DNA of 63,857 bases, counting the filler, from Pelomyxa schiedti (lineage: Eukaryota > Protista > Evosea), in NCBI GenBank assembly GCA_020536535.1. It is 11 parts of 11 records of this genome, joined end to end, with 100 filler letters (N's around TTAATTAATTAA, not from the genome) between each part and the next. Parts side by side here need not be neighbours in the genome. Positions count along the whole stretch, not along the records: positions 1 to 10,449 come from JAHLWZ010000459.1; 10 more parts are not named here. The stretch is one strand, 5' to 3'. Of the stretch, positions 1-12,797 are shown piece by piece. The translations under genes were made by a program, and so were the position numbers. Every line of letters starts with the position of its first letter. Within the stretch, counting starts at the first letter, position 1. The notes beneath the pieces were generated by a model. It saw nothing but the letters and a program-made list of their open reading frames with translations, had not been told where the DNA came from and made no database searches.

Positions 1-3000
1 GAGGTCTCCAGTGGCCAGGGATTGCAAGTATTGTGAGTAGCTGTTCTTGACCTCAGTTAAAATCACCGACATCATCGATGCAGCGTCGGACTTGCTGCAC
101 TTCTTCACAAACGACTTTGGGAAGCCTTTTGTACCAGAGTGTGAGCATGAATAGGAAAAAAAAAAATAGAGACAGAGCCCTCACCTCACCTGCACCTCCA
201 GGTGCCGGAGAAGTCATCCACGCAATCAACTCATCGAATGTGTTCTCCTGTGCGTGAGGAAAAGGCGAGAATTCAATCACTGCGAGGAGAATGAAGAACA
301 AGGAAAGCGCCATACCAGGGCAAGGGGAACAAAGATAAACCTCAGTTCGAGTGCCATGAGAGCTGTTCGCCACCTGTCCTCCCACGGAACCTTGTTCTGA
401 TCGTGAACGGGGTGGCTGTCACCCCCTGTGCTCTTTGACCACTTGTGCGGAGGTGCATCCCCAGCCACAACGATGGTGTGGCAACCGGTGCCCCACGAGA
501 ATGCAAGGGCCGAATCCAGTCCCGTGACGATATCCTCTGGGGTGTCCCCGCCACCAGAAGCAGCAACACTGGCGAGGAAATCTTGAACTGCCTTGCTGGG
601 TGAGAAGGGGCACGGCTGTGGGTGCCCTTCGTCACCAATGTCGCGGTATCCAACGAATCCGACGTGCGCCTGTATCGTCGATGCGCTAGCATATCCGGAC
701 TTGGTGCTTGAATCCTGACAATGCTTCTCCACTGCTTGTATGCATGAAACGATATTCTGTTTGCAACTTGAGATATAGCTTCCCATGCCTATTGGAAAAA
801 GGTCTCAGTAGGTGCTGGGTGTGGAGATCNNNNNNNNNNNNNNNNNNNNNNNNNNNNNNNNNNNNNNNNNNNNNNNNNNNNNNNNNNNNNNNNNNNNNNN
901 NNNNNNNNNNNNNNNNNNNNNNNNNNNNNTGAATCCTGACAATGCTTCTCCACTGCTTGTATGCATGAAACGATATTCTGTTTGCAACTTGAGATATAGC
1001 TTCCCATGCCTATTGGAAAAAGGTCTCAGTAGGTGCTGGGTGTGGAGATCATTGAGTGGAAGGCATTCGCATTGATGATAAAAGGAAGAGGGAGAGTGAA
1101 GTGAGGGAAACATACTGCCAGTGGCATCCATCAAGAAAACGACATATTGATCTCTGCTTCCATGTCCAAACCCCGCGATTGAAGAACAATCAATCGAGGT
1201 GAGATGCACAGTGGGTGCGGTATCGTCAAATCCCGAAGTTGATGCCGAGCCGGGGGAGGGGGTGATCGATCTTGAAAAGTACCCACCAGGTGGAGCGGAA
1301 GCTGTGGAGTGGGGTGCAGCGGCAGACCGTGCCCATTCATGATAATATTCCGTGCGGTGTTTCATATTAGTTCTCAGCTTGCAGGTCGGACCATCTCGAC
1401 AAGGAAGCAAGAAATCCCAAAAGCCTGTGTACCTTTAAGTTTACAATAAATAATATTTCACTGTGGAACCTTTATGGAACTTGGCACGTCTATGCTCAGG
1501 ATCATCAAGTTGAGGACAGGGAGATAGCGTGCAAACTGGCTTCTCCATGTGTATGTAGAACTTACAATGCTCTTCCTCGTGCACAAGGTTACAAGCTGAC
1601 CCCCACAAGCACACATGAACAAATTCGGTGCAATGCGGACGCTTTTCAAAATCTAAACAATCTGTTGCTTTGGGACACTTTGGTAGATCACTGGAATCTG
1701 TGCTGCCAAAAAGGAAGTCCAATCCTCTTCTCCACAACGATTTCTGAGGCTTTTCTTCGTCGGCTGGTGTATCACAACCGTCCACGGTGGAAGAAGTTGG
1801 TGGTAAGGGTGACCTCTTGGGTGTAGGAACTGTGGGTGGTGCTTCACCAGGCATGGATCGCTGGGACAACAAAACTTCCAAGTCAGCAATGAGCACTGAA
1901 CCAGTGGAAAGGTGGAGGGAAATGAACTTGAAATTTGTCAAAGGTTCAGCTGAATCAGGGCATTCGAAATTCAAGGAAGTCATGTTAAATCTCCTGGAAG
2001 GCCCCCAGTGTTCCACTGTCACCAGGTTTGCGTTGTAGTCCAGCCGAACGTAATAGTGCACAAACTCAGCACAGTTGATTCCGTTGTTGAAGGCAGCCAT
2101 TTCGGTGTGAGGTGGTGCACCCTCACAAACCGCCGGGAGATCTCTGTACACCTTCAGGGAATCTTCGGAATTTGCTGTTTTTTATGTGGTGTTAGATCTA
2201 GTAAAGGAGTGGACTGTGACACATACTTGGAATGTGGATTGTGATGGCATGCCTGTCTTCACCATGGTGCAAAATGTCCCCTGTGTTTGACAAACACAAG
2301 TTGAAACCTGTTGCTGTTGTGGAATGAGCCTTGAAATACAAATGAGACTTGTGAGACTCGGACGAATGCAGGTTGACGGGAACGAAAGTTTCGTGCGTCG
2401 GGTGTTGTTCAACAACGAAGTAAAATCCTCGTGGCTGAACAATAAGTGGGTGCTCAAAGCGGGAGTCTGTGAATTCGAGAGAGGCTTTCACGACATCGGG
2501 AACGAGTTTGTGGTGGAAGTGTTTCAACATGTCACTCAAGTGTGGTGTCAACGCAACACTTTTCTTGATGAAAATTGTGTCAACGTATCCAAATGGAATG
2601 TAACCGGGCAAATGGGCTTCGGTGACTCCATGAGAGTCAGTCTCCATCCACAAATTCCTCACGTGGTTGACATCTACTTTGTGGGCCTCTATAGTCTGCT
2701 TGGTCGAAACTCTGCAGACCCATTCTTTCGACTCCGCGACAGCCCAATCAAGGGGACCCAAAGCAGTTGACTCCCATGTGTCGGGTTTCACACACGGGTG
2801 GAACTTGGCACGCGTGAATGCAGTCTCCCCTCCTTCTGTCCACCCCTTGCTCTTGCCCATCCAACTCCTTCTGTCCAGGCATATTTTGCCACCACTTGCG
2901 AATGTATACCACCCAGTGGGATAAGCGGTTGCTGCGAGTGGCAACATGTAAAAGTCGGGGTGATGCATGATCTCGCGCCTCAAAACGATGCACACTTGTT

Positions 3001-6000
3001 TGTCGCCGTAGTGGCCTGTGTTTGGTCCCATCGATGCAAAGACAGTGAAGTCGGTTCTTAAACCCTTGTCTTTGGAATAATTGATTCCAGGTGCTTCAGC
3101 AATGCATTTCGCAACAGCATTCACGATGGTGGTGATTGTATCGCTCATTTTCGTGTGTAGAGTGGCATTGCATTTCTTGAGGACTTGAGAGGCTCCAAGT
3201 AACTTCTCTTCGTCTTCAAGAGTCATGATGGGAGTGTGTGAGAACAAGTTCTTTGAGCCCTGAATCTTGGCTGCTTCTTCTGGATCGAGATCTGGAGTTG
3301 TTGATTTGGTTTCTAACAATTGGATACACTTCTCGGAGACGGAAGGTTGAAGAGATCGCACGAGCAGGACACCATATTCACGAGCACATCGATGGAACCC
3401 TTCATTCTGCCCAACGAAATGAGGCCGAACATCGGGGTGGTTGATCACACAGTGAACAACAGACGAAGGATCCTGCCACAGAGACTTGAATTGTTGTGCA
3501 GAGGCGATCAGTTGAATGTCCAGCATCGATGTCAACAAATCGACACTGCACATGTGAACTGGTTGTTGTGCTCGGAACCATCGCACAATATTCTTGAAGT
3601 TCGAGGTGTTTAAAATGGAGTCATCTTTCAAAAGTTTCTTGCAATGTTTCTCCCATCGCCGAATGTTGTCAAAGAATGCAACTCTGATGGGCGTTGTGGA
3701 ATCAGTTCCAACAGCCTCAGGGTTCTCCTTCTGGGCAAACTCAGCAGGGTCGTGCAGCGAAAGATGTCTGGTTGGAGACCAAGGAAGAACCGGAAGTGAA
3801 TGATTTTTCGATCGAAGGTGGGATTCACTGTTGTCAGTGCACCATAAATCCGTGCAGTGAGGTCGAGATATTGGGATTCCAGGGTGTGCCACGGATCCCA
3901 AGTGATCTTCGTGGAGGTTTCGGCAAGCCGGAAGGAACTTGCACTTGACATCGGAATGGAGGAAGTGTTTGGTGTGGCTGGGATCTCCCAGACGGTCACA
4001 GAACACACCCCTCTCACACATGTGAGCGTACAAGCTGTGGTGTTCCTTGTTCGATTTTGGAATGTCGCATGAGTATGGGGTGTGTTCACATGGTCTGTTG
4101 AATGGGTGATAGAATTTGGCGAGGTGACTTCTCTGGTATACATCATTACATAGATACCCAAAAGAGCAGTCTTCAAGAAGATGCCTTGCTTCATTCATGT
4201 GACTTTCATCATGAGCAAGGAATTTCTCACATCGAGACCCGTGCTCGCACTCAGGAACATGCAAGAATTCAGTCATGTGTGCGGTGTTTTCATTGCGTTC
4301 AGTGCAATGCCCCATCTTCGGGCATTGAGGTGGATGCACGAAGTGCAAGCAGTGCTCATCACGCTGTGGGGAAAAGAACTCTGGACATGTTCCACCCAGT
4401 GGGCATTTGACTTGGTGCAGCCACATGTGCTGGTGGATGGCCGACGTGCAGGTGCAGGAAGTCCCATTGAGGCATGGTGGTGGGTGAACAACTGAGGCGA
4501 AGTGTCCAGCGGAGGTGTTCGTGCAACCTCCACCATACCCACAGATGGCTGGACCATCAATATAATCACCTGTGTGGCTGAGAGGGATGAAGCCAGGCTT
4601 TACGACTGGCAGCATGACATATGGGCCAACAGCTTGAGTAATTTGGGCAGCTGGACCAAATTCTGCCTTTTCCCTTCGTGTTGTAACCCCGGTTTCGTCG
4701 AACTTTTTTGCAAAGGCTCTGCACTTGCCATTGGTGGCTGAAGAACCATCACTCTCGAGAATTGCAAAGTACACCCTTGAGAAACAGCCAGCGTATTGTT
4801 GCAAAACCTCCTTGAAGATTGCGGCAACGTGGTCTGCATCACCATCAAATGTGCATGACAGTTTCGAATAGTGTCGGCAACAAAGGGGATATTGTATTAT
4901 CAGAGGTGAGGGAAAAATAGATGAATGGACGTCAAACCTGGTGGGTTGTTGAAGGCACCACAACCAATTGCCCCGAGAACCAGCTGCTTCACGTTGTACA
5001 TGGCTGCAGTGTTCAAGAGCTGTTCGAGCTTGAACCTCGTGATCATCGCCGCACTCGGTGACAGGAACACCTCCCCAGTCCTTGGATCCCTCACGGTGAA
5101 CTTGTTGTCAACATTGTGAAGCGCAGCCGCTGAGATGACATTCACAGTCCAAGGAGTCGTGAGGAACTGGAACCCTGTCAAGGAGGTATCTCTGAACACC
5201 GTGACATCACGAGTGAAGATGGTGCCACATAGTGGCAGTGGGTAACCAATCTGCTTCAGTGCTGGGAACAGTGATGTCCGCATGCACAAGTCTTCCTCTT
5301 GTGCACTTTTCCCATTCTCAAATCCACCCCCGGGTGTCGTGGAGTTTGCCATGTTCAGAACAGCTGTTGGTTTGTTTTATGTGTGAATGAAGAAATCAAT
5401 TATCAATCACACACAGAGAGATAAAGAAGGGTGTGAGAAAGAAGATCACAAGGGGGAAAGGGAAAGGGAAGAAGAAAGAAACCTGTGAGTTCACCAGGAA
5501 ACTGTTGCATGAGCTGCTGTGCGACATGGAGGCAGTCCATGTTCACGATGAACACCTCCGTTGCACTGTTCAGTGCGGGGTGCTGTGGCAACGGTTCCAG
5601 TTTGTAATGTGCCATGCTCAGTGCTTTGGTTGGAGGGTGGAACACTCCACACAGCAACCCTCTGTTGCTGTTCATCTCGTCTTCTTCCTTGGAGCATATC
5701 ATCTCCTCTGCCATCAAAGCTGCAGGTGATCCAGCAGTGGTTCCATCTTCAACAGCCTCGATATTGGCTGCCTTATTATTTTCATCACTCCTTTCCTCGA
5801 TGAGGAAATAGACACCAGGTGAGCTTGGGTTCAAAGCATGCAAGGTGAAACCAGCACTCAATATTTGCAGGTGAACAATTAATTCATCCCTCCACACAGG
5901 TGTGTTGTTGTCAATGCACCTCTGTGCGTATTTGTTGAATGTCTTTCTCCACGTGAATGAGTCCCAAGGTTTGGAGAGAACTGAGAATTCCAAACTTGGA

Positions 6001-9000
6001 GTTGTGTATCGGTTTAAGTTTTCAAACCTGTCGTCGTTGGTGAGAGGCACTCTTTTGATAGACTGGGGAAGAGTTTCATGTCGGTCAGGTATTGGTCTGG
6101 GTTGAACTTCAAAAGAAGGTGGTAAAAGTGTCACTGTGATTTCTCTTTGCTTGCCGGCACAGATGAACAAATTGTCAGTGCTGATCACTGTCACAACGAA
6201 CTCCCCACTGCTGCCATCTGTGGGTGAACAGGAGGAAGATGAAACATCGATGATTGGTTGCCGGGCTTGGAACAGAAACCGGAACAGGTGATTGATCGAA
6301 GGTGCTGTTACACGAACCTAAGTTTTTTTTTGGGTTGATTCTCCAAGTGAGATCAAGAAACCAATGAGTGAGATGAAGATTTGAACCTGTGGGCAGAGTT
6401 CAAGTGCTCCAATGCTGGCAGGAAAGCGCAATGACAGTGCAATTCCCAGGTCTTTTGAGAACGGAAGTGGGAAAGCAAGGAATGTCCTGTTGTTGTCAAT
6501 CACAATGCGGGCATCTCTTGGGTATTCCCTTTGAGACCAGTCAGATGTGAGTATCAGTGAATGACGAAATGGAAGGAACACGGCTCACCCTGTTGTTTCA
6601 AAGACCATTGTCTTGTATCCCGTGATTGCTGCTGTTTCTGGCTTGCATTTTGGTTCAAAGAAGGTCCAAATGTATTCAACTCTCTGGCAGAAGAATTTGG
6701 TTGCCCAGTGTAATGCTTCAGCAGACGGTGACTGTGGCCCAAATGGTAGTTTCTCAAGATGTCTTTTCAGTTCTTGTGCTTTCCTTCCGTCATCCAGAGG
6801 GTTCAGTGAGAACTGGAACGAAGCCATTTTGTGATGTGGCAGGTTTTCAATTGTTCCAAGATGAACAGGTTGCACTGAGAGTGAAAGTGAAAATTTGGGA
6901 GCAATTGCATCAGGTGATATGGTGCACCCTCTTGGGAAAACCACAGTCAGATCAAAACACGCAGGAAGTGGAATCTTTGAGAAAATCACAGCCACAGACT
7001 CACAGAATATCTGAACGATGGTATCGGCAATATTCACATCCACTTGTTTGTCCAGAAGCCACTGCTGCAACCTTGCACCATGTTGCATGAACCGATCCAG
7101 AATCTGGCCCTTCAAGCACTCAAATGATGGTGCCCACACCAGCTGGAGGATGTCGGCACCAGTCCATCTCTGGATTGTCTGAAAGTCTTCACAGCTCTTG
7201 ATTGGAAGTGGTGGCCCATTGCCCCCACCAGTCATGACACAACGGAGGTAAAACTCAAGTCCAACCCATTGCATCACGTGAAGTGCCTTCGCACCTTCTG
7301 CTGCAAGAGTGTTGTGCAACCTCCTGAGTTGCTCGGTTACAAATGGAAGTGGCAATCGACAGGCAGGGTGGATGTTCTTGCTCTCGTTGTTGTAAGCATT
7401 TAGAAGCTCTGACTCTTGCAAAGGTCTCTGGTTCACATCTTTTTATTTTAAAAGGATGATTAAAAGATTATGCAACAAACATACAGGGGAAACACACCAG
7501 AACACTTTATTTGCATAACCTTCAAGTTCTCGTTTGAATCAAACAATTCACTGTGATACATCCTCACAAGATCGTAAACATTGATATCCTCCGGGAGATT
7601 CTTTCCAAGTGCCTGAAAGAACGGTTCCGCAACCCTTCTCATCACAACGTGGAGGGAAACAGTTGCAGCGTTGGTGTGCTCGTTCAGCCTCTGATTCACT
7701 GCTGGAAGGAACGTGTCGATGGCCTCTGTTTGTACCGGGTCGAATCGCTGGAGCTGCGATGTCAGCTCTTGCATCTTCTTGTGTGCGGCTGCCATGAGAG
7801 CCTCGGAACTCGTGAGATCGGTGGTGTGCAAAAAAAAGTCTCTGACAGCGATTGCAACTTGTCCAGCACAGAACGTGGCTGCTTCTTGCCGAAATTTGTT
7901 TGTCTGTGTGTTGAAAAAAAAAAGTCAGGGAACAAACTGCCACGGAGATAGTGATGAAAAGAGAGGGAGTAGATGAAATGGGGGTGTGACACGAACCAAT
8001 GCTTCACTTTCAGCTGTGATCCTGTCCTCCACCTCTCTTTTGAATCTTGCCAAATCCCAGTTTCTTGTTTTCCCCTCGACTGTTGGTCCCTTCATTCCCA
8101 CAACTTCTCCCAATCTGTGCTCAATGGATTTCATTGCAAGTCCAATTGCCACCTGAATTTAAATTTGAGTGAAACGAAAATTAGGAGTCTCACGAAAAGC
8201 AAAGTCCATAAACTGGGTGCAAACAACGGCAAAAATAAAACCTGGACAAAAGAGGGAGCAACAGGAGGTGGTGCAGCAGTCATCACTGCGCTGAAGTGTG
8301 TCTTGACATCAGAAAACACAGCATCAAGAGCCTCCAGTCGCTTTGAGTCACAGTAAAAGTCAACAACCTTGACCATCTGTGGTGTTTCCAGCTTGCCATT
8401 GACACCCTCCAAGACTGTCTGGACGAAGAAAAGAAACGTGCTCCCTGTGACTTCGATGGTGTCTGTTACTTTTTCCCCCCTCTATTCGTTTTTTGGTTTT
8501 TGTTTGTCAATGAGTTAAGTGCACTGGCCATCAGAATCAAAAGGTGAGCAGGAGAAGACAGTACCAGCCTGAGAGGTGAAGTGGTCAATGTTCCAACTCG
8601 CACGAAGATCTGTTTCAACTTTGCAATGAAATCAGCATGTGTTGGAACGTCTGGTCTTCCCTCATATGAGCATGGTGGAAGTGTGAAAAATTTGAATGGT
8701 TTCACACTGTTTGGAAACAATTTTTCGAATTCTGGTGGAAGCTTGGAATCATATTCATTCCCCTCTGTCCAGAATGCATCATCTTAATAATTGGGTTTTA
8801 ACTATTTTGAGGAAGTTGGTGTGAGAGTTACCTTGCTCAAGTGTCCAATTCTGCCCGAAGTTCTGTGCAATGTATGCAAACACAGAGGGGCAGTTCTTCT
8901 TGAAAAGAATGTCACTCTGCCGATTGCTTTTGAAATCAGAAATTGCATCTGCGAGGTCCTGATCAGAAAGAATTGTCAGAGTCAAATAAAAAACGTAAAA

Positions 9001-10026
9001 AAAGATTGTATGTTTGTATTGAACCTTCAAAGTGGTTTGGTCTTGTTCATTCCAAGAGGGAGTTCGACGCAGGAACAAAATTGTGCTGCTCATGAAGAAG
9101 ACCAGGATCCACAACCGTGTGAAATAGTATTGGTCCACATCAGATTTTCGCCGCGAACTCATGGGGTCGACGGCATAGAGTCCTTCAACATCAACCAACA
9201 GAACTGGTATCTCACACCCGGGAATCTGTGTTGTGTGAGGCAACCAAAAATAAATGAACGTCAATACGTTGATCAGACTTGGGAAAAACCAAATGCCAGA
9301 AGTGCAACCAAATTTCAAGTTGTCTGAAAGAGAAGGTGTCATTAAAATGCAGCAAAGCAGTCATGAAAAATATCCCGCGTGTGCTGCACTTTGTTTGTTT
9401 TGGACTTGGGGCTTGCTTACCAGAGGTGACAAACGGATCAGTGTTTGTGCCCTGGAGAATCTGGATTGCGTAATTGAGCAGTGTTGACTTGCCAGTCCTC
9501 GTTGGGCCCAGCACTGACACCGTTGCAAATTTTTTTTCTCTGATTGAATCGAAGAACTGCCTCACAGACTCTGACTGATTGAGCACCAAAGGTGCCCCTG
9601 ATCCGTGTTTGTATGCCCACATCTTATCGTTGAACGACGCTGGGTTCTCCTCCCTGTGAAACTCTGTTGCACCCCCCCCCATAAGTTGGAAGCCAAACAA
9701 AAAAAACAAACAAAGCATAAAACTGGAAAAAAACCCAGAAGTCAAACCAAAGAAGAGCAAGCATATACAGAAACCAAAACTCCCGCACACGCGCACAAGC
9801 ACACAAACACACCCATCGCCTCGAGCACAGGGCCGATGGTGGGCACGTCGCGGTCGTACACGTTCACGAGGCTAGGAAGCACAAGCGGCATCGTGCCGCC
9901 CACAACATCTACGCCCGCGCCGCTATCGGCATCTGTTACGCGAATGGAACCGCTGCCCCCTTCGTTTCCCTGCTGTTGCGGCGCATCGGTGTACACTGCA
10001 CTGGTCGGTGTTGTGGTTGTTGCCAT
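1..10026 (-). CDS. Giant multi-exon gene: GBP/atlastin-type GTPase - unknown region - bacterial-type PARG - 10 PBZ fingers - ART-like domain - beta domain - 4 PBZ fingers - VWA (3' end wraps to 10449-10245)
   Basis: ATG at 10026 (MATTTTPTS). Most exon junctions could be joined in frame with GT-AG introns, e.g. 7497-7439 (CS/DVNQ), CPQ/VRVT, ELT/AVLNM, NPP/DHVAA, HIP/TNSED, DATG/SMGSY. Junctions around 8800-7830 were checked less closely. Confidence 0.85.
320..1150 (-). other. von Willebrand factor A (VWA) domain
   Basis: MIDAS-like VVFLMDATGSM (spliced), VGFVGYRD, GGGDTPEDI, W...IVVAGDAPPH. Confidence 0.88.
1327..1680 (-). repeat. Second cluster of 4 PBZ-like zinc fingers
   Basis: CPKATDCLDFEKRPHCTEFVH, CLWGSACNLVHEEEHCKFYIH, CTLSPCPQLDDPEHRRAKFH, CRDGPTCKLRTNMKHRTEYYH. 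Confidence 0.75.
2560..3570 (-). other. Putative ADP-ribosyltransferase-fold domain (DarT/DUF3626-like)
   Basis: PVHMCSVDLLTSMLDIQLIAS resembles the DarT-type HxTxxxNLxSIL...LLS strand. VFASMGP..HYG..VCIVL and TEAHLPGYIPFGYVDTIFI (candidate catalytic Glu) follow. Motif resemblance only. Confidence 0.5.
3800..4543 (-). repeat. Array of 10 tandem PBZ-like (CCHH) zinc fingers
   Basis: Repeated C-x4-6-C-x6-10-H-x5-H units, e.g. CGYGGGCTNTSAGHFASVVH, CSFGYLCNDVYQRSHLAKFYH, CERGVFCDRLGDPSHTKHFLH. They resemble the PBZ consensus CxY/FGxxC...HxxxF/YxH. Confidence 0.8.
4720..5570 (-). other. Bacterial-type poly(ADP-ribose) glycohydrolase macrodomain (DUF2263/TIGR02452-like)
   Basis: AVLNMANSTTPGGGFENGKSAQEEDLC carries the PARG signature GGG-x6-8-QEE. 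LVLGAIGCGAFNNPP/DHVAAIFKEVL and FSRVYFAI follow. Confidence 0.92.
8600..9560 (-). other. Guanylate-binding protein/atlastin (GB1/RHD3) GTPase domain
   Basis: P-loop VSVLGPTRTGKSTLLN (GPTRTGKS at 9508-9485), G2-like CTSGIWFF, G3-like LLVDVEG, then LVFFMSSTILF and FKFFTLPP. Order and spacing match GBP-family motifs. Confidence 0.85.
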
Positions 10027-10244
10027 TTTGAGGTACTCTGAAGGCAACAACAACCAACCTTGTGTTTACGGGTTTGCACTTCAACGTTGGTTTTGATTAC
10101 CGAGGTCTTCCCAAAGACAAAAAGAAAAGCCTTAGGAGAAAAGTTCCCAGTTGCAACTTGATACTAAAGCTCACTTCGCTGTCTCAACTCTTCCTGGGCT
10201 TCTTATGATCTGGCTCCCGCGGCTTCTCCTCGTTGGGTGTGGAA

Positions 10245-10449
10245 CTACCACGGTTTGGAACGTTTTGTTGAGCCGGGGTGGAAGCTGCTGTGCCTGATTG
10301 TTGGGGGTCTTGGGTAACTGGCCTGTGTGAGGTCTCCAGTGGCCAGGGATTGCAAGTATTGTGAGTAGCTGTTCTTGACCTCAGTTAAAATCACCGACAT
10401 CATCGATGCAGCGTCGGACTTGCTGCACTTCTTCACAAACGACTTTGGG
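10245..10449 (-). CDS. 3' terminal exon of the giant GBP-PARG-VWA gene (same gene via circular join, or the neighbouring tandem copy)
   Basis: 10329-10449 is identical to 1-121. The frame FPKSFVKKCSKSDAASMM... continues to a stop at 10245. Confidence 0.8.
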
Positions 10450-10549
10450 NNNNNNNNNNNNNNNNNNNNNNNNNNNNNNNNNNNNNNNNNNNNTTAATTA
10501 ATTAANNNNNNNNNNNNNNNNNNNNNNNNNNNNNNNNNNNNNNNNNNNN
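10450..10549. other. Artificial contig linker N44-TTAATTAATTAA-N44
   Basis: The same linker (six-frame stops) occurs at 26920-27019, 37716-37815, 38831-38930, 45307-45406, 48039-48138, 51958-52057, 55331-55430, 58477-58576 and 59948-60047. Adjacency across linkers is meaningless. Confidence 0.98.
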
Positions 10550-11096
10550 TGGCCCACTACTTGAATCTCGTTCTGAGCAACAGAGTGGGGGGAAAGAGAG
10601 AGACCAAAGAACCTTTTTTCACTTCTCCCTCAGCGTTTCGGGTGGGCCAAGCAAGAAAAGGTTTTTACGGGAGGTCACTTCCTGGGACTTGAGGCAGTTG
10701 CGAAGGCGAAGAAACGAAAAACCCAAAACATCAAATTCGCTGTGATCGGCACTTCCGAGAAGGTCAGTTAACGGGGAACCCAATTCGCTCTCTGGTCCAG
10801 TGAAAAGCGAAAACCGTTGTACAACCCTGGAAAGTGACCAAAAAATTCAAAACAAACAAACTAAAACGCACAACTACACACAAACAAACAAACACCACAC
10901 ACAGACACCTGGACAATGAGGGGGAACAACAAGGTGCAGCCGATGTCGTCAGTCTCCCCGGCGTCGGCGTTGTCAGACGCGTCGACCAGCAACCACACGA
11001 TGTCCTCGGCCTCGTGCGGCTCCGACGCCGAGGCTGCGATGGGTGCAAGCTCCGAGATAATGGCTGATTTTCTGCGGAGCAGAAGAAGGTGCGTTC
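10550..11096 (+). repeat. Near-identical second version of 12480-12975 (promoter and first exon of the cyclase gene), likely an allelic bubble
   Basis: Same sequence with small indels (extra ~31 bp near 10671; MRGNNK vs MRGNK), placed at the scaffold start before an N gap. Confidence 0.75.
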
Positions 11097-11195
11097 NNNN
11101 NNNNNNNNNNNNNNNNNNNNNNNNNNNNNNNNNNNNNNNNNNNNNNNNNNNNNNNNNNNNNNNNNNNNNNNNNNNNNNNNNNNNNNNNNNNNNNN

Positions 11196-12254
11196 NGCCT
11201 CGCGGTGTCGGGCACGACGCTGGGGGTCACGCGCGGCGTCGAGGCGGTGCGCGACGCGCCCGGGAGGGCCCGGTGGCTGGGCCCGGATCTGTACCTGGAG
11301 AGCGTCAACGTCGCCCGCAGATTCAGGCTAGTGAGGCGGGTGGGGCGGGATTGTGGGACCAATGGGGGTGGTGGTGGTGGTGCCAATGAAGGGGTGCCAA
11401 TTGGGCAACAGGGAAGACCTATGGATAGGGCTGTAAATGCAAGGTGGTATGTGAATTGGATGAGGAATGAGGCTGTGGTGCCTGGAGCACCTGCGATTCT
11501 CAGTGGGTACTCGCTTACTATCTGCAACATACACCAGTTTGGATGTCCCAGTGTTCCGATGTCAGAGGACAGAATTGATGCTGTAACTGTCCAATGGCCT
11601 GACTCCGAGGTGCCAGAGGAATCAAAAAGGATTTTCCCTGGTGTGTTCTTCAACAGAGTTCTGCCTGATGAGGCTTTGTTGGTGTTTGCATATATCAGTG
11701 ATGACAGCCACCATGTTACTTACACATTGATTGATGTTGGTATGACCCACAGCTCCAGAATCCTCAAAGTAACAAGTTCAATATCGATTGCTTGGCCTAC
11801 AACCCTGAGGGTGTGCTCCCTTGAAACTGTTCTTGTGATGAGAAGGAAGAGTGACAATGCTCCCTTATTCATTATGCAGCCCCTCACGCTGTTCCCAGAG
11901 TGCTGTTGGGTGTATGTGGTGGACCCGGCAACATGGTCATCCAGGAGGATCACAGAAACCTGCAACAACCTTACGCAAGTGAGTGACTCTGTGTTCTGCA
12001 TGGACAGTACGGTGACTGGGTCATATGAGCTGTGGGACTGCAACAACACAGAGCAACCGCTGAGGACAGTTCAGAATTCAGATAGCTTTTTTGACCATGT
12101 TGTTGGTGGCAGGGGATTCCTGTTTGCAGTGAAAGGGAGGCAGTTCACTGTAATTGAGGCATCCACAGGGTTTGTTGTGATGACCTTTTTGGTTGGTACC
12201 AGGGATCCTTCTTCAGTGTTCTCCATCGCCCCAACGCTCTCCTTTCTGGAATAA
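11196..12254 (+). CDS. Lineage-specific intronless orphan-family protein (5' partial)
   Basis: 349-aa ORF. C-terminal pattern (YELWDCNNTEQPLR...GFLF...VIEASTGFVVMTF) is shared with 27028-28389. Confidence 0.7.
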   Translation, partial: XLAVSGTTLGVTRGVEAVRDAPGRARWLGPDLYLESVNVARRFRLVRRVGRDCGTNGGGGGGANEGVPIGQQGRPMDRAVNARWYVNWMRNEAVVPGAPAILSGYSLTICNIHQFGCPSVPMSEDRIDAVTVQWPDSEVPEESKRIFPGVFFNRVLPDEALLVFAYISDDSHHVTYTLIDVGMTHSSRILKVTSSISIAWPTTLRVCSLETVLVMRRKSDNAPLFIMQPLTLFPECCWVYVVDPATWSSRRITETCNNLTQVSDSVFCMDSTVTGSYELWDCNNTEQPLRTVQNSDSFFDHVVGGRGFLFAVKGRQFTVIEASTGFVVMTFLVGTRDPSSVFSIAPTLSFLE

Positions 12255-12797
12255 ATTATGGCCCACTACTTGAATCTCGTTCTGAGCAACAGAGTGGGGG
12301 GAAAGAGAGAGACCAAAGAACCTTTTTTCACTTCTCCCTCAGCGTTTCGGGTGGGCCAAGCAAGAAAAGGTTTTTACGGNNNNNNNNNNNNNNNNNNNNN
12401 NNNNNNNNNNNNNNNNNNNNNNNNNNNNNNNNNNNNNNNNNNNNNNNNNNNNNNNNNNNNNNNNNNNNNNNNNNNNNNNTGGCCCACTACTTGAATCTCG
12501 TTCTGAGCAACAGAGTGGGGGGAAAGAGAGAGACCAAAGAACCTTTTTTCACTTCTCCCTCAGCGTTTCGGGTGGGCCAAGCAAGAAAAGGTTTTTACGG
12601 AAGGCGAACAAACGAAAAACCCAAAACATCAAATTCGCTGTGATCGGCACTTCCGAGAAGGTCAGTTAACGGGGAACCCAATTCGCTCTCTGGTCCAGAG
12701 AAAAGCGAAAACCGTTGTACAACCCAAAAAATTCCAAACAAACTAAAACGCACAACTACACACAAACAAACAAACACCACACACAGACACCTGGACA

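Follow-up and report, generated by a model that had tools for sequence, protein, structure and literature searches.

A predicted ADP-ribosyltransferase-fold family joined to a microbial-type PARG and CCHH fingers in Pelomyxa schiedti and other eukaryotes

Nearly the whole of the 10,449-bp contig JAHLWZ010000459.1 of the amoeba Pelomyxa schiedti is taken up by a single minus-strand gene with short GT-AG introns, and its largest exon encodes a module that is likely to represent a previously unclassified family with the ADP-ribosyltransferase (ART) fold. The family would be of the His...Glu (diphtheria-toxin, PARP and DarT-like) type, set in a conserved supermodule of PARG, fingers, ART domain and β-sandwich, with its transferase activity predicted. 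The contig is present in full, as it stands in a 52-Mb eukaryotic assembly, and forms the first part of our window, the whole stretch of 63,857 nucleotides that was analyzed; all coordinates refer to this window. A tblastn search of the window gives the gene product as KAH3762375.1 (P0001), a protein of 2720 amino acids (aa) annotated as 'TIGR02452 family protein'. An earlier note on this DNA, made from the sequence alone, had placed a DarT-like ART at 2560-3570 in one polypeptide with a PARG and had proposed a writer, a reader and an eraser in cis, acting as a self-neutralizing effector.

The largest exon is a 921-codon open frame (2198-4963, minus strand). Its residues 435-921, at 2201-3661 on the same strand, make up the 487-aa module, whose residue 1 is exon residue 435. 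All three motifs on which the note had based its fold assignment lie within the interval given there and within this exon, namely HMCSVDLLTSML...LIAS (exon residues 470-488, nucleotides ~3500-3556), VFASMGP..YG..VCIVL (residues 641-661) and EAHLPGYIP..VDTIFI (residues 782-799, nucleotides ~2567-2620). The module is single-copy, and no second copy was found in the Pelomyxa genome.

When 1.8 billion cluster representatives were scanned exhaustively with HMMER, 208 clusters of relatives of the module came to light, 96 of them with E<1e-10. The majority lie within proteins of 700-2700 aa, and those that carry a species name belong to Mastigamoeba balamuthi, Euglena gracilis and Adineta vaga. We counted conservation in an alignment of 87 sequences that share 21-37% identity with the Pelomyxa query. 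The family motifs read P-x-H-x-C...S-I...G...S; D...T...V-F...G-P-[HN]-x-G-x-Y-G; H-P-D; A-A-T-x-[YF]; R-x-x-W; D-S-H; and E-x-H-L-P, and the Pelomyxa copy retains every nearly invariant residue. In the first motif, His36 (exon His470, codon 3554-3556) is kept in 62/67 sequences and Ser54 in 64/68. The central block is more constant still (D198 82/86, F208 82/87, G212 87/87, G219 86/87, H234 86/87, P235 84/87, D236 77/87 and the aromatic residue at 247 82/87), as is the last motif, with Glu348 (exon Glu782) in 86/87, His350 (exon His784) in 85/87 and Pro352 in 87/87; Arg264 and Lys286 are also conserved. Judged from this alignment, the three motifs are not chance occurrences.

The AlphaFold2 model of the module has a predicted local distance difference test (pLDDT) score of 92.1 and a predicted template-modeling (pTM) score of 0.91. 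It contains a split β-sheet NAD+-binding core that superimposes on solved ARTs, and the motifs fall on strands 34-38/51-53, 207-211/223-227 and 348-351/360-366 (module numbering). As in the H-Y-E clade, model and alignment place the motif I His on strand 1 and the motif III Glu at the start of a strand. In the model, a helical bundle of ~150 aa follows the second strand as an insert, and E-x-H-L-P is the characteristic motif of the Glu strand. Four long helices (87-120, 127-141, 148-164 and 166-189, pLDDT >94) span residues 87-189 between the first two motif regions, in keeping with the long helical insert that the note had described. A Foldseek search of the Protein Data Bank (PDB) placed SopF at the top, and an ESM Atlas shape search matched a DUF3626 cluster (TM 0.71 over 218 residues) and DarT clusters (0.65); its top row is a rotifer cluster with PBZ fingers that is probably the family itself. 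When solved structures were ranked, the top 14 entries were all ARTs, from five different families, with the best entry outside them more than 2 Z units lower, and the two independent structure libraries agree on the ART resemblance. Foldseek against viral models gave nothing below 1e-3, and the ESM Atlas feature search gave just leads under 0.9 (OspC, DUF3626 and DUF3841). The model and these searches thus revealed an ART core and no confident unrelated fold, and the assignment of His and Glu strands was borne out by predicted strands that align, in weak profile matches, with the His and Glu of DarT. The predicted structure supports an ART fold for the module.

The public gene model removes 51 nt (17 aa, C-V-I-N-H-P-D-V-R...) at 3401-3451 on the minus strand, inside the module. 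This stretch is in frame, lies in a well-modeled loop/helix region and fits the family consensus v-l-q-H-P-r-V-r; the annotated intron is probably a mis-annotation and the stretch coding.

We compared the family with profiles of DarT (19 domains) and DUF3626 (4 proteins), each drawn from six-frame searches of 401 Pseudomonadota genomes, and of OspC (OspC1-4 plus a Pantoea homolog, 5 sequences from plasmid records). SopF carries DUF3626 as its Pfam domain (PMC6682159). The DarT profile is deeper than the other two, and the thin ones do not rank their families below DarT. Against DarT, hhalign aligned two separate pieces, both at catalytic motifs. One lays the module's H-x-C....F.S-I...G.L.S on H-I-T-H..N-L.s-I...G.L of DarT, His36 on H13 (E 3.6e-4); the other aligns the Glu strand with the catalytic A-E strand. 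In DarT, H13, I14 and T15 bind NAD+ and E160 is catalytic (PMC9967889). With the columns of the insert deleted, the DarT comparison reached a probability of 55.9% (E 1.1e-4, score 35.8), and the greedy alignment spans positions 1-198 of 203. This score lies above all 62 controls, which comprise the reversed profile (13.1), 30 column shuffles (at most 19.1), 30 block shuffles (at most 29.8) and a PARG profile (12.5). The OspC comparison pairs E-x-H-L-P with E326-Y-H328-I-P, bringing the module's Glu onto E326, and is not significant (probability at most 2%, E 0.02-0.12); Glu and His of this E-x-H motif are essential in OspC3 and CopC (PMC9239266). Against DUF3626, the central G-P..Y-G..H-P-D block alone aligns (E 0.006-0.04, probability at most 6%). 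The central block thus has weak collinear alignments with blocks of DUF3626, OspC and DarT.

Because the insert-deleted match exceeds its controls, 'DarT-like' is a fair description of the fold and motifs as far as these alignments go, and we claim no membership in DarT proper. That part of the note's label held (56%, E 1e-4, in round figures), but the module is not a Pfam DarT, DUF3626, OspC or PARP member, and SopF and OspC/CopC are its equals by structure. On the predicted model, DarT, SopF and OspC/CopC are tied as nearest. Alignments with SopF, CopC and OspC3 start at model residue 1 and cover 190-215 residues, and those with DarT start at residue 19-31 and cover 165-182. We do not place DarT nearer than SopF, because there is no Pfam DarT match at threshold and the DarT profile is the deeper one. 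Our preferred description is of a new branch within the His...Glu ART assemblage, to which DarT, SopF and OspC also belong.

Each of these relatives also differs from the module. DarT (PF14487) is a single-stranded DNA thymidine/guanosine ADP-ribosyltransferase of DarTG toxin-antitoxin systems, whereas the module has the 150-aa helical insert and E-x-H-L-P in place of A-E-x-L, lacks an identifiable equivalent of DarT Arg51 (in a region of low-confidence alignment) and keeps the Tyr71 position poorly. It is moreover eukaryotic, intron-bearing and part of a 2720-aa protein, and its partner is a PARG rather than DarG. SopF (DUF3626, PF12294), a small secreted bacterial effector, is the Salmonella ARF-activated ADP-ribosyltransferase of V-ATPase; its triad is I-Y-E, whereas the Pelomyxa family keeps the His. 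OspC3 and CopC (PF06128) are calmodulin-activated arginine ADP-riboxanases that share E-x-H-[LI]-P as the sole common motif. The helices of OspC precede the His strand, whereas those of the module are inserted after strand 2, and OspC carries an ankyrin domain and is delivered by bacterial type III secretion.

The PARG named in the earlier note is indeed part of the same polypeptide. PF10021 matches the exon at 4900-5352 (E 3.7e-11) and KAH3762375.1 as a whole (E 5.3e-18; 66.2 bits against a cut-off of 23.5), and the C-terminal end of TIGR02452 falls in the next exon. The GT-AG intron at 4835-4938 joins this exon to the 921-aa exon. The microbial PARG signature GGG-X6-8-QEE, in the definition of PMC4245714, is intact at 5293-5331 as GGG-x7-QEE (G-G-G-FENGKSA-Q-E-E). 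A Pfam scan of KAH3762375.1 reported no match to Macro (PF01661). At least 450 residues precede the module in 43 homologs; a PARG-like domain was found in 34 of these, always N-terminal and 350-450 aa from the module, and Pfam confirmed PF10021 in 8 of the 11 long homologs scanned. The order microbial-type PARG, CCHH fingers with PBZ-like spacing, ART domain and galectin-like β-sandwich is a conserved eukaryotic supermodule; the sandwich directly after the ART core is likewise conserved in the family. In KAH3762375.1, a GBP-like GTPase and a helical region precede this order, and further CCHH fingers and a vWA domain follow it; Pfam itself recognizes three domains in the protein, the GTPase, the PARG and the vWA.

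A regular-expression search found ten fingers between PARG and ART module, against a mean of 0.2 and a maximum of 4 in shuffled sequences, and four more after the sandwich, against a mean of 0.02. All 14 fit C-x4-6-C-x6-10-H-x5-H, a spacing of the PBZ type (C-x5-C-x6-H-x5-H). Pfam PBZ (PF10283) had no match on the 921-aa exon, and when the PBZ model was run on ten single Pelomyxa fingers it gave one faint match (E 0.23), to a finger of the downstream array. Significant Pfam PBZ matches were found in the homologs P0005 and P0062, the latter from A. vaga and with fingers of the same spacing, and at least two such CCHH fingers occur in 73 of 154 fetched family proteins. We infer a putative ADP-ribose 'reader' role for the Pelomyxa fingers from their spacing and their relatives, because the PBZ model does not recognize them. 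The proposed trio in cis therefore stands in part: the ART fold and the PARG were found, but for the reader the spacing is there and the model match is not.

Proteins of the PARP14 type also combine writer, reader and eraser in one chain, with a PF00644 transferase and a MacroD-type eraser. The likeness lies in having an ART-fold transferase and macrodomain-fold domains that bind or hydrolyze ADP-ribose in one polypeptide; the Pelomyxa ART is not PF00644, and its eraser is not of the MacroD type. The PARG-finger part of the architecture was already known, as Perina et al. 2014 report bacterial-type PARGs with PBZ repeats in A. vaga (PMC4245714), the species of P0062 with its microbial PARG and Pfam-recognized PBZ fingers. 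The passages of that paper on these proteins list PARG and zinc fingers, and in those passages the ART-fold module and the galectin-like domain go unmentioned.

Elsewhere in the Pelomyxa assembly, a six-frame search found 37 matches to the PARP catalytic domain (PF00644) on more than 20 contigs (for example C733, C187, C800, C797, C607 and C163), several of them in open frames above 1800 aa. Canonical PARP loci number at least 20 and microbial-type PARG loci about 6, an expanded ADP-ribose toolkit for an anaerobic amoeba. At 5829-12637 of a 362-kb metagenomic contig (L002), the closest homolog of the module, P0002 (37% identity), lies 294 bp downstream of a 1292-aa open reading frame with a microbial PARG on the same strand; the two are probably one gene split by an intron. 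Another metagenomic homolog, P0033 (2351 aa), likewise runs from GBP (E 1e-15) through PARG to the module, and the GBP-like GTPase may belong to the device. A third, P0012 (505 aa), sits on an 11.4-kb Logan contig among dense genes with ankyrin and zf-MYND domains, a context reminiscent of giant viruses or intron-poor protists.

Several observations weigh against an enzyme of the ART class. Pfam, NCBIfam, PADLOC and PDB profile searches of the module were blank, giving no significant link to a curated ART family. Pfam on all 87 aligned members produced scattered single matches at E>0.005, phmmer and profile searches of PDB sequences only helical or chance matches, and a word-index protein search with the module nothing or one already-known member. 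Pfam DarT did not match the window protein, and 0/87 members reached threshold (best E 0.059); the DarT models of PADLOC did not match the module, and DarT and OspC models found nothing in a six-frame search of the Pelomyxa genome. No member of the 87 matched PF12294 at E<=0.1, PF06128 matched neither the module nor the 87, and a genome contig search found no OspC relatives. PF00644 matched neither module nor family, and none of its 37 genome-wide places is on this contig. The Foldseek matches in the PDB are weak (best E 6.6e-3), and the moderate DarT profile match, a sequence-level resemblance, needs removal of the insert and stays, at 56%, below the usual level of proof. Candidates for the motif II aromatic are F208 (82/87), Y218 (64/85) and Y/F247 (82/87), but no residue can be named with confidence as the aromatic 'Y' of the triad, and the position aligned to DarT Tyr71 is poorly conserved (N 40, F 22 and Y 20 of 87). 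RNA from one single-cell library comprises two short contigs (1567-1808 and 2676-3002, depth 2.6-3.9) without splice joints, which do not demonstrate expression of the gene. Finally, Pelomyxa has many canonical PARPs, and therefore the PARG and fingers need not have the module as their writer.

We nevertheless favor a His...Glu ART-fold enzyme within the supermodule and propose the following mechanism. NAD+ would be bound in the ART domain by the His motif on strand 1 together with an aromatic side chain from the central block, and transfer of ADP-ribose to a macromolecular target, nucleic acid or protein, would then be catalyzed by Glu782. As to the substrate, likeness to DarT would point to nucleic acid and likeness to SopF and OspC to protein. 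The helical lobe and the β-sandwich would govern activation and target choice. The lobe may be regulatory or bind a cofactor, because more of the helical region is covered in the alignments with SopF and OspC/CopC than in those with DarT and because those enzymes are switched on by host factors, SopF by ARF GTPases and CopC by calmodulin (PMC10333799, PMC9239266). Anchoring of the protein to ADP-ribose polymer or nucleic acid would fall to the fingers, and the PARG would shorten or take off ADP-ribose (chains) produced by the ART domain itself or by the many PARPs of the amoeba. PARG is described in PMC4245714 as cutting ribose-ribose bonds and not the first ADP-ribose-protein link, and its presence therefore argues for chains or regulation rather than for a simple antidote.

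A bolder version of this proposal is possible, if doubtful: the module would be the founding example of eukaryote-wide DarT-like enzymes that ADP-ribosylate nucleic-acid bases or build chains without PARPs. Such an enzyme would form a self-limiting device, hard-wired to its own PARG eraser, to fingers that bind poly(ADP-ribose) (PAR) or nucleic acid and to a lectin-like target-recognition domain. The inserted helical lobe would act as its switch, in Pelomyxa perhaps through the protein's own GBP-like GTPase, and the device would serve genome defense or innate immunity in protists and rotifers.

An ART fold that performs other NAD+ chemistry, as an arginine ADP-riboxanase like OspC/CopC, an NAD+ glycohydrolase or a Tpt1-like RNA 2'-phosphotransferase, is unlikely. 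The shared E-x-H-[LI]-P would fit the first of these, but the OspC alignments are not significant; the Tpt1 match covers just 106 residues, with no Tpt1 motif of the H-H-R-R type seen; and the conserved fusion of PARG with PBZ-type fingers suits PARG-cleavable ADP-ribose (chains) better than riboxanation. We also weighed a catalytically dead module, limited to binding NAD+, ADP-ribose or PAR and acting on the adjoining PARG as its sensor or regulator. The superfamily does include inactive ART folds, an enzyme and putative binders are already present in the protein, and motif II is the one motif not placed with confidence. This reading is nonetheless improbable, as Glu348, His350, His234, Asp198, Arg264 and the strand-1 His are near-invariant at 21-37% identity, which argues for an active-site pattern rather than a scaffold.

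The self-neutralizing secreted effector, a DarTG-like toxin and antitoxin fused in one chain, is the part of the earlier note that found no backing, and we regard it as very improbable. In its favor, DarT shares first place among the structural matches and leads the profile matches, and natural DarT-macrodomain fusions exist (7omu and an ESM Atlas entry). Nothing in the protein, however, indicates secretion or toxin-antitoxin logic: no signal peptide is apparent by eye in the first 70 residues, PADLOC DarT models are without a match, and the chain is 2720 aa long with GBP-like GTPase, finger and vWA domains. The eraser is of the PARG type, which spares the protein-linked ADP-ribose, rather than a DarG/TARG1-type macrodomain, and the gene is single-copy and intron-bearing with homologs in other free-living eukaryotes. 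That the ART resemblance is a modeling artifact or convergence of some other fold is hardly credible in view of the structure ranking and its Z gap, the agreement of both libraries, the placement of conserved residues on the canonical His and Glu strands and a DarT profile match above every control.

ADP-ribosylation in eukaryotes is usually ascribed to PARPs, ecto-ARTs, sirtuins and Tpt1, and enzymes of the DarT, SopF and OspC types are viewed as bacterial toxins or effectors. A conserved eukaryotic family with their fold would give ADP-ribose signaling in eukaryotes a new writer; the family comprises at least 208 clusters, takes in Archamoebae, Euglena and bdelloid rotifers, and is joined in nearly all cases to a PARG and to PBZ-type fingers. 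Judged by the modeled fold, this ART family is new and widespread among eukaryotes, its fixed architecture is unusual and its enzyme activity is predicted. The module would be the partner with which the 'bacterial-type PARG plus PBZ' proteins of the 2011-2014 literature act, and a fixed writer-eraser fusion would be a natural system for self-limiting ADP-ribosylation, possibly of nucleic acids. Its members are at present annotated just as 'TIGR02452 family protein' or 'hypothetical' because the family escapes Pfam, NCBIfam and PDB sequence searches.

Table 1. Features of the KAH3762375.1 gene in window coordinates.
Feature	Position	Strand	Basis or remark
Whole multi-exon gene	56..10026	(-)	tblastn of KAH3762375.1 on the window, and Pfam
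GBP-like GTPase P-loop, protein N-terminus	9443..9574	(-)	PF02263, E 2.8e-4 (KAH3762375.1 residues 102-194); 0.02 on exon
Microbial-type PARG catalytic (macrodomain-fold) domain	4786..5724	(-)	PF10021; introns ~5368-5480 and 4835-4938
Ten tandem CCHH fingers, between PARG and ART module	3797..4543	(-)	C-x4-6-C-x6-10-H-x5-H, ~25-aa period
Predicted ART-fold module, module residues 1-396 (exon 435-830)	2474..3661	(-)	
Strand 1, helix, strand 2; proposed NAD-binding motif I	3500..3562	(-)	P-x-H-x-C...S-I...G..S; strands 34-38, 51-53
Helical insert, ~150 aa, between strands 2 and 3	3047..3499	(-)	module residues 55-205
Central conserved block; candidate nicotinamide pocket	2921..3070	(-)	D198...T..VF..xGP.G.YG...H-P-D...AAT.Y/F; module residues 198-247
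E-A-H-L-P at strand start; proposed catalytic motif III	2606..2620	(-)	strand 348-351
Galectin/concanavalin-A-like β-sandwich, directly after ART core	1858..2431	(-)	spans intron ~2173-2227
Four more CCHH fingers, after sandwich domain	1339..1677	(-)	short intron within
vWA-like domain, D-x-T-G-S MIDAS-like start	447..1141	(-)	PF25106 VWA_4, E 2.1e-6 (KAH3762375.1 residues 2506-2629)

A bacterial (endosymbiont) origin of the contig was considered and rejected on the GT-AG introns, the eukaryotic annotation and the Mastigamoeba homolog. The vWA-like domain encloses an assembly gap, a run of N at 830-929 with the same ~120-bp sequence on both sides (~709-829 and 930-1050), and the two contig ends (1-121 and 10329-10449) carry the same 121-bp sequence as a direct repeat. 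Each of these features has the look of an overlap left unresolved in the assembly graph, with k of ~121; the N run is probably not a true gap, and the contig probably closes on itself, as a tandem copy or a circular path.

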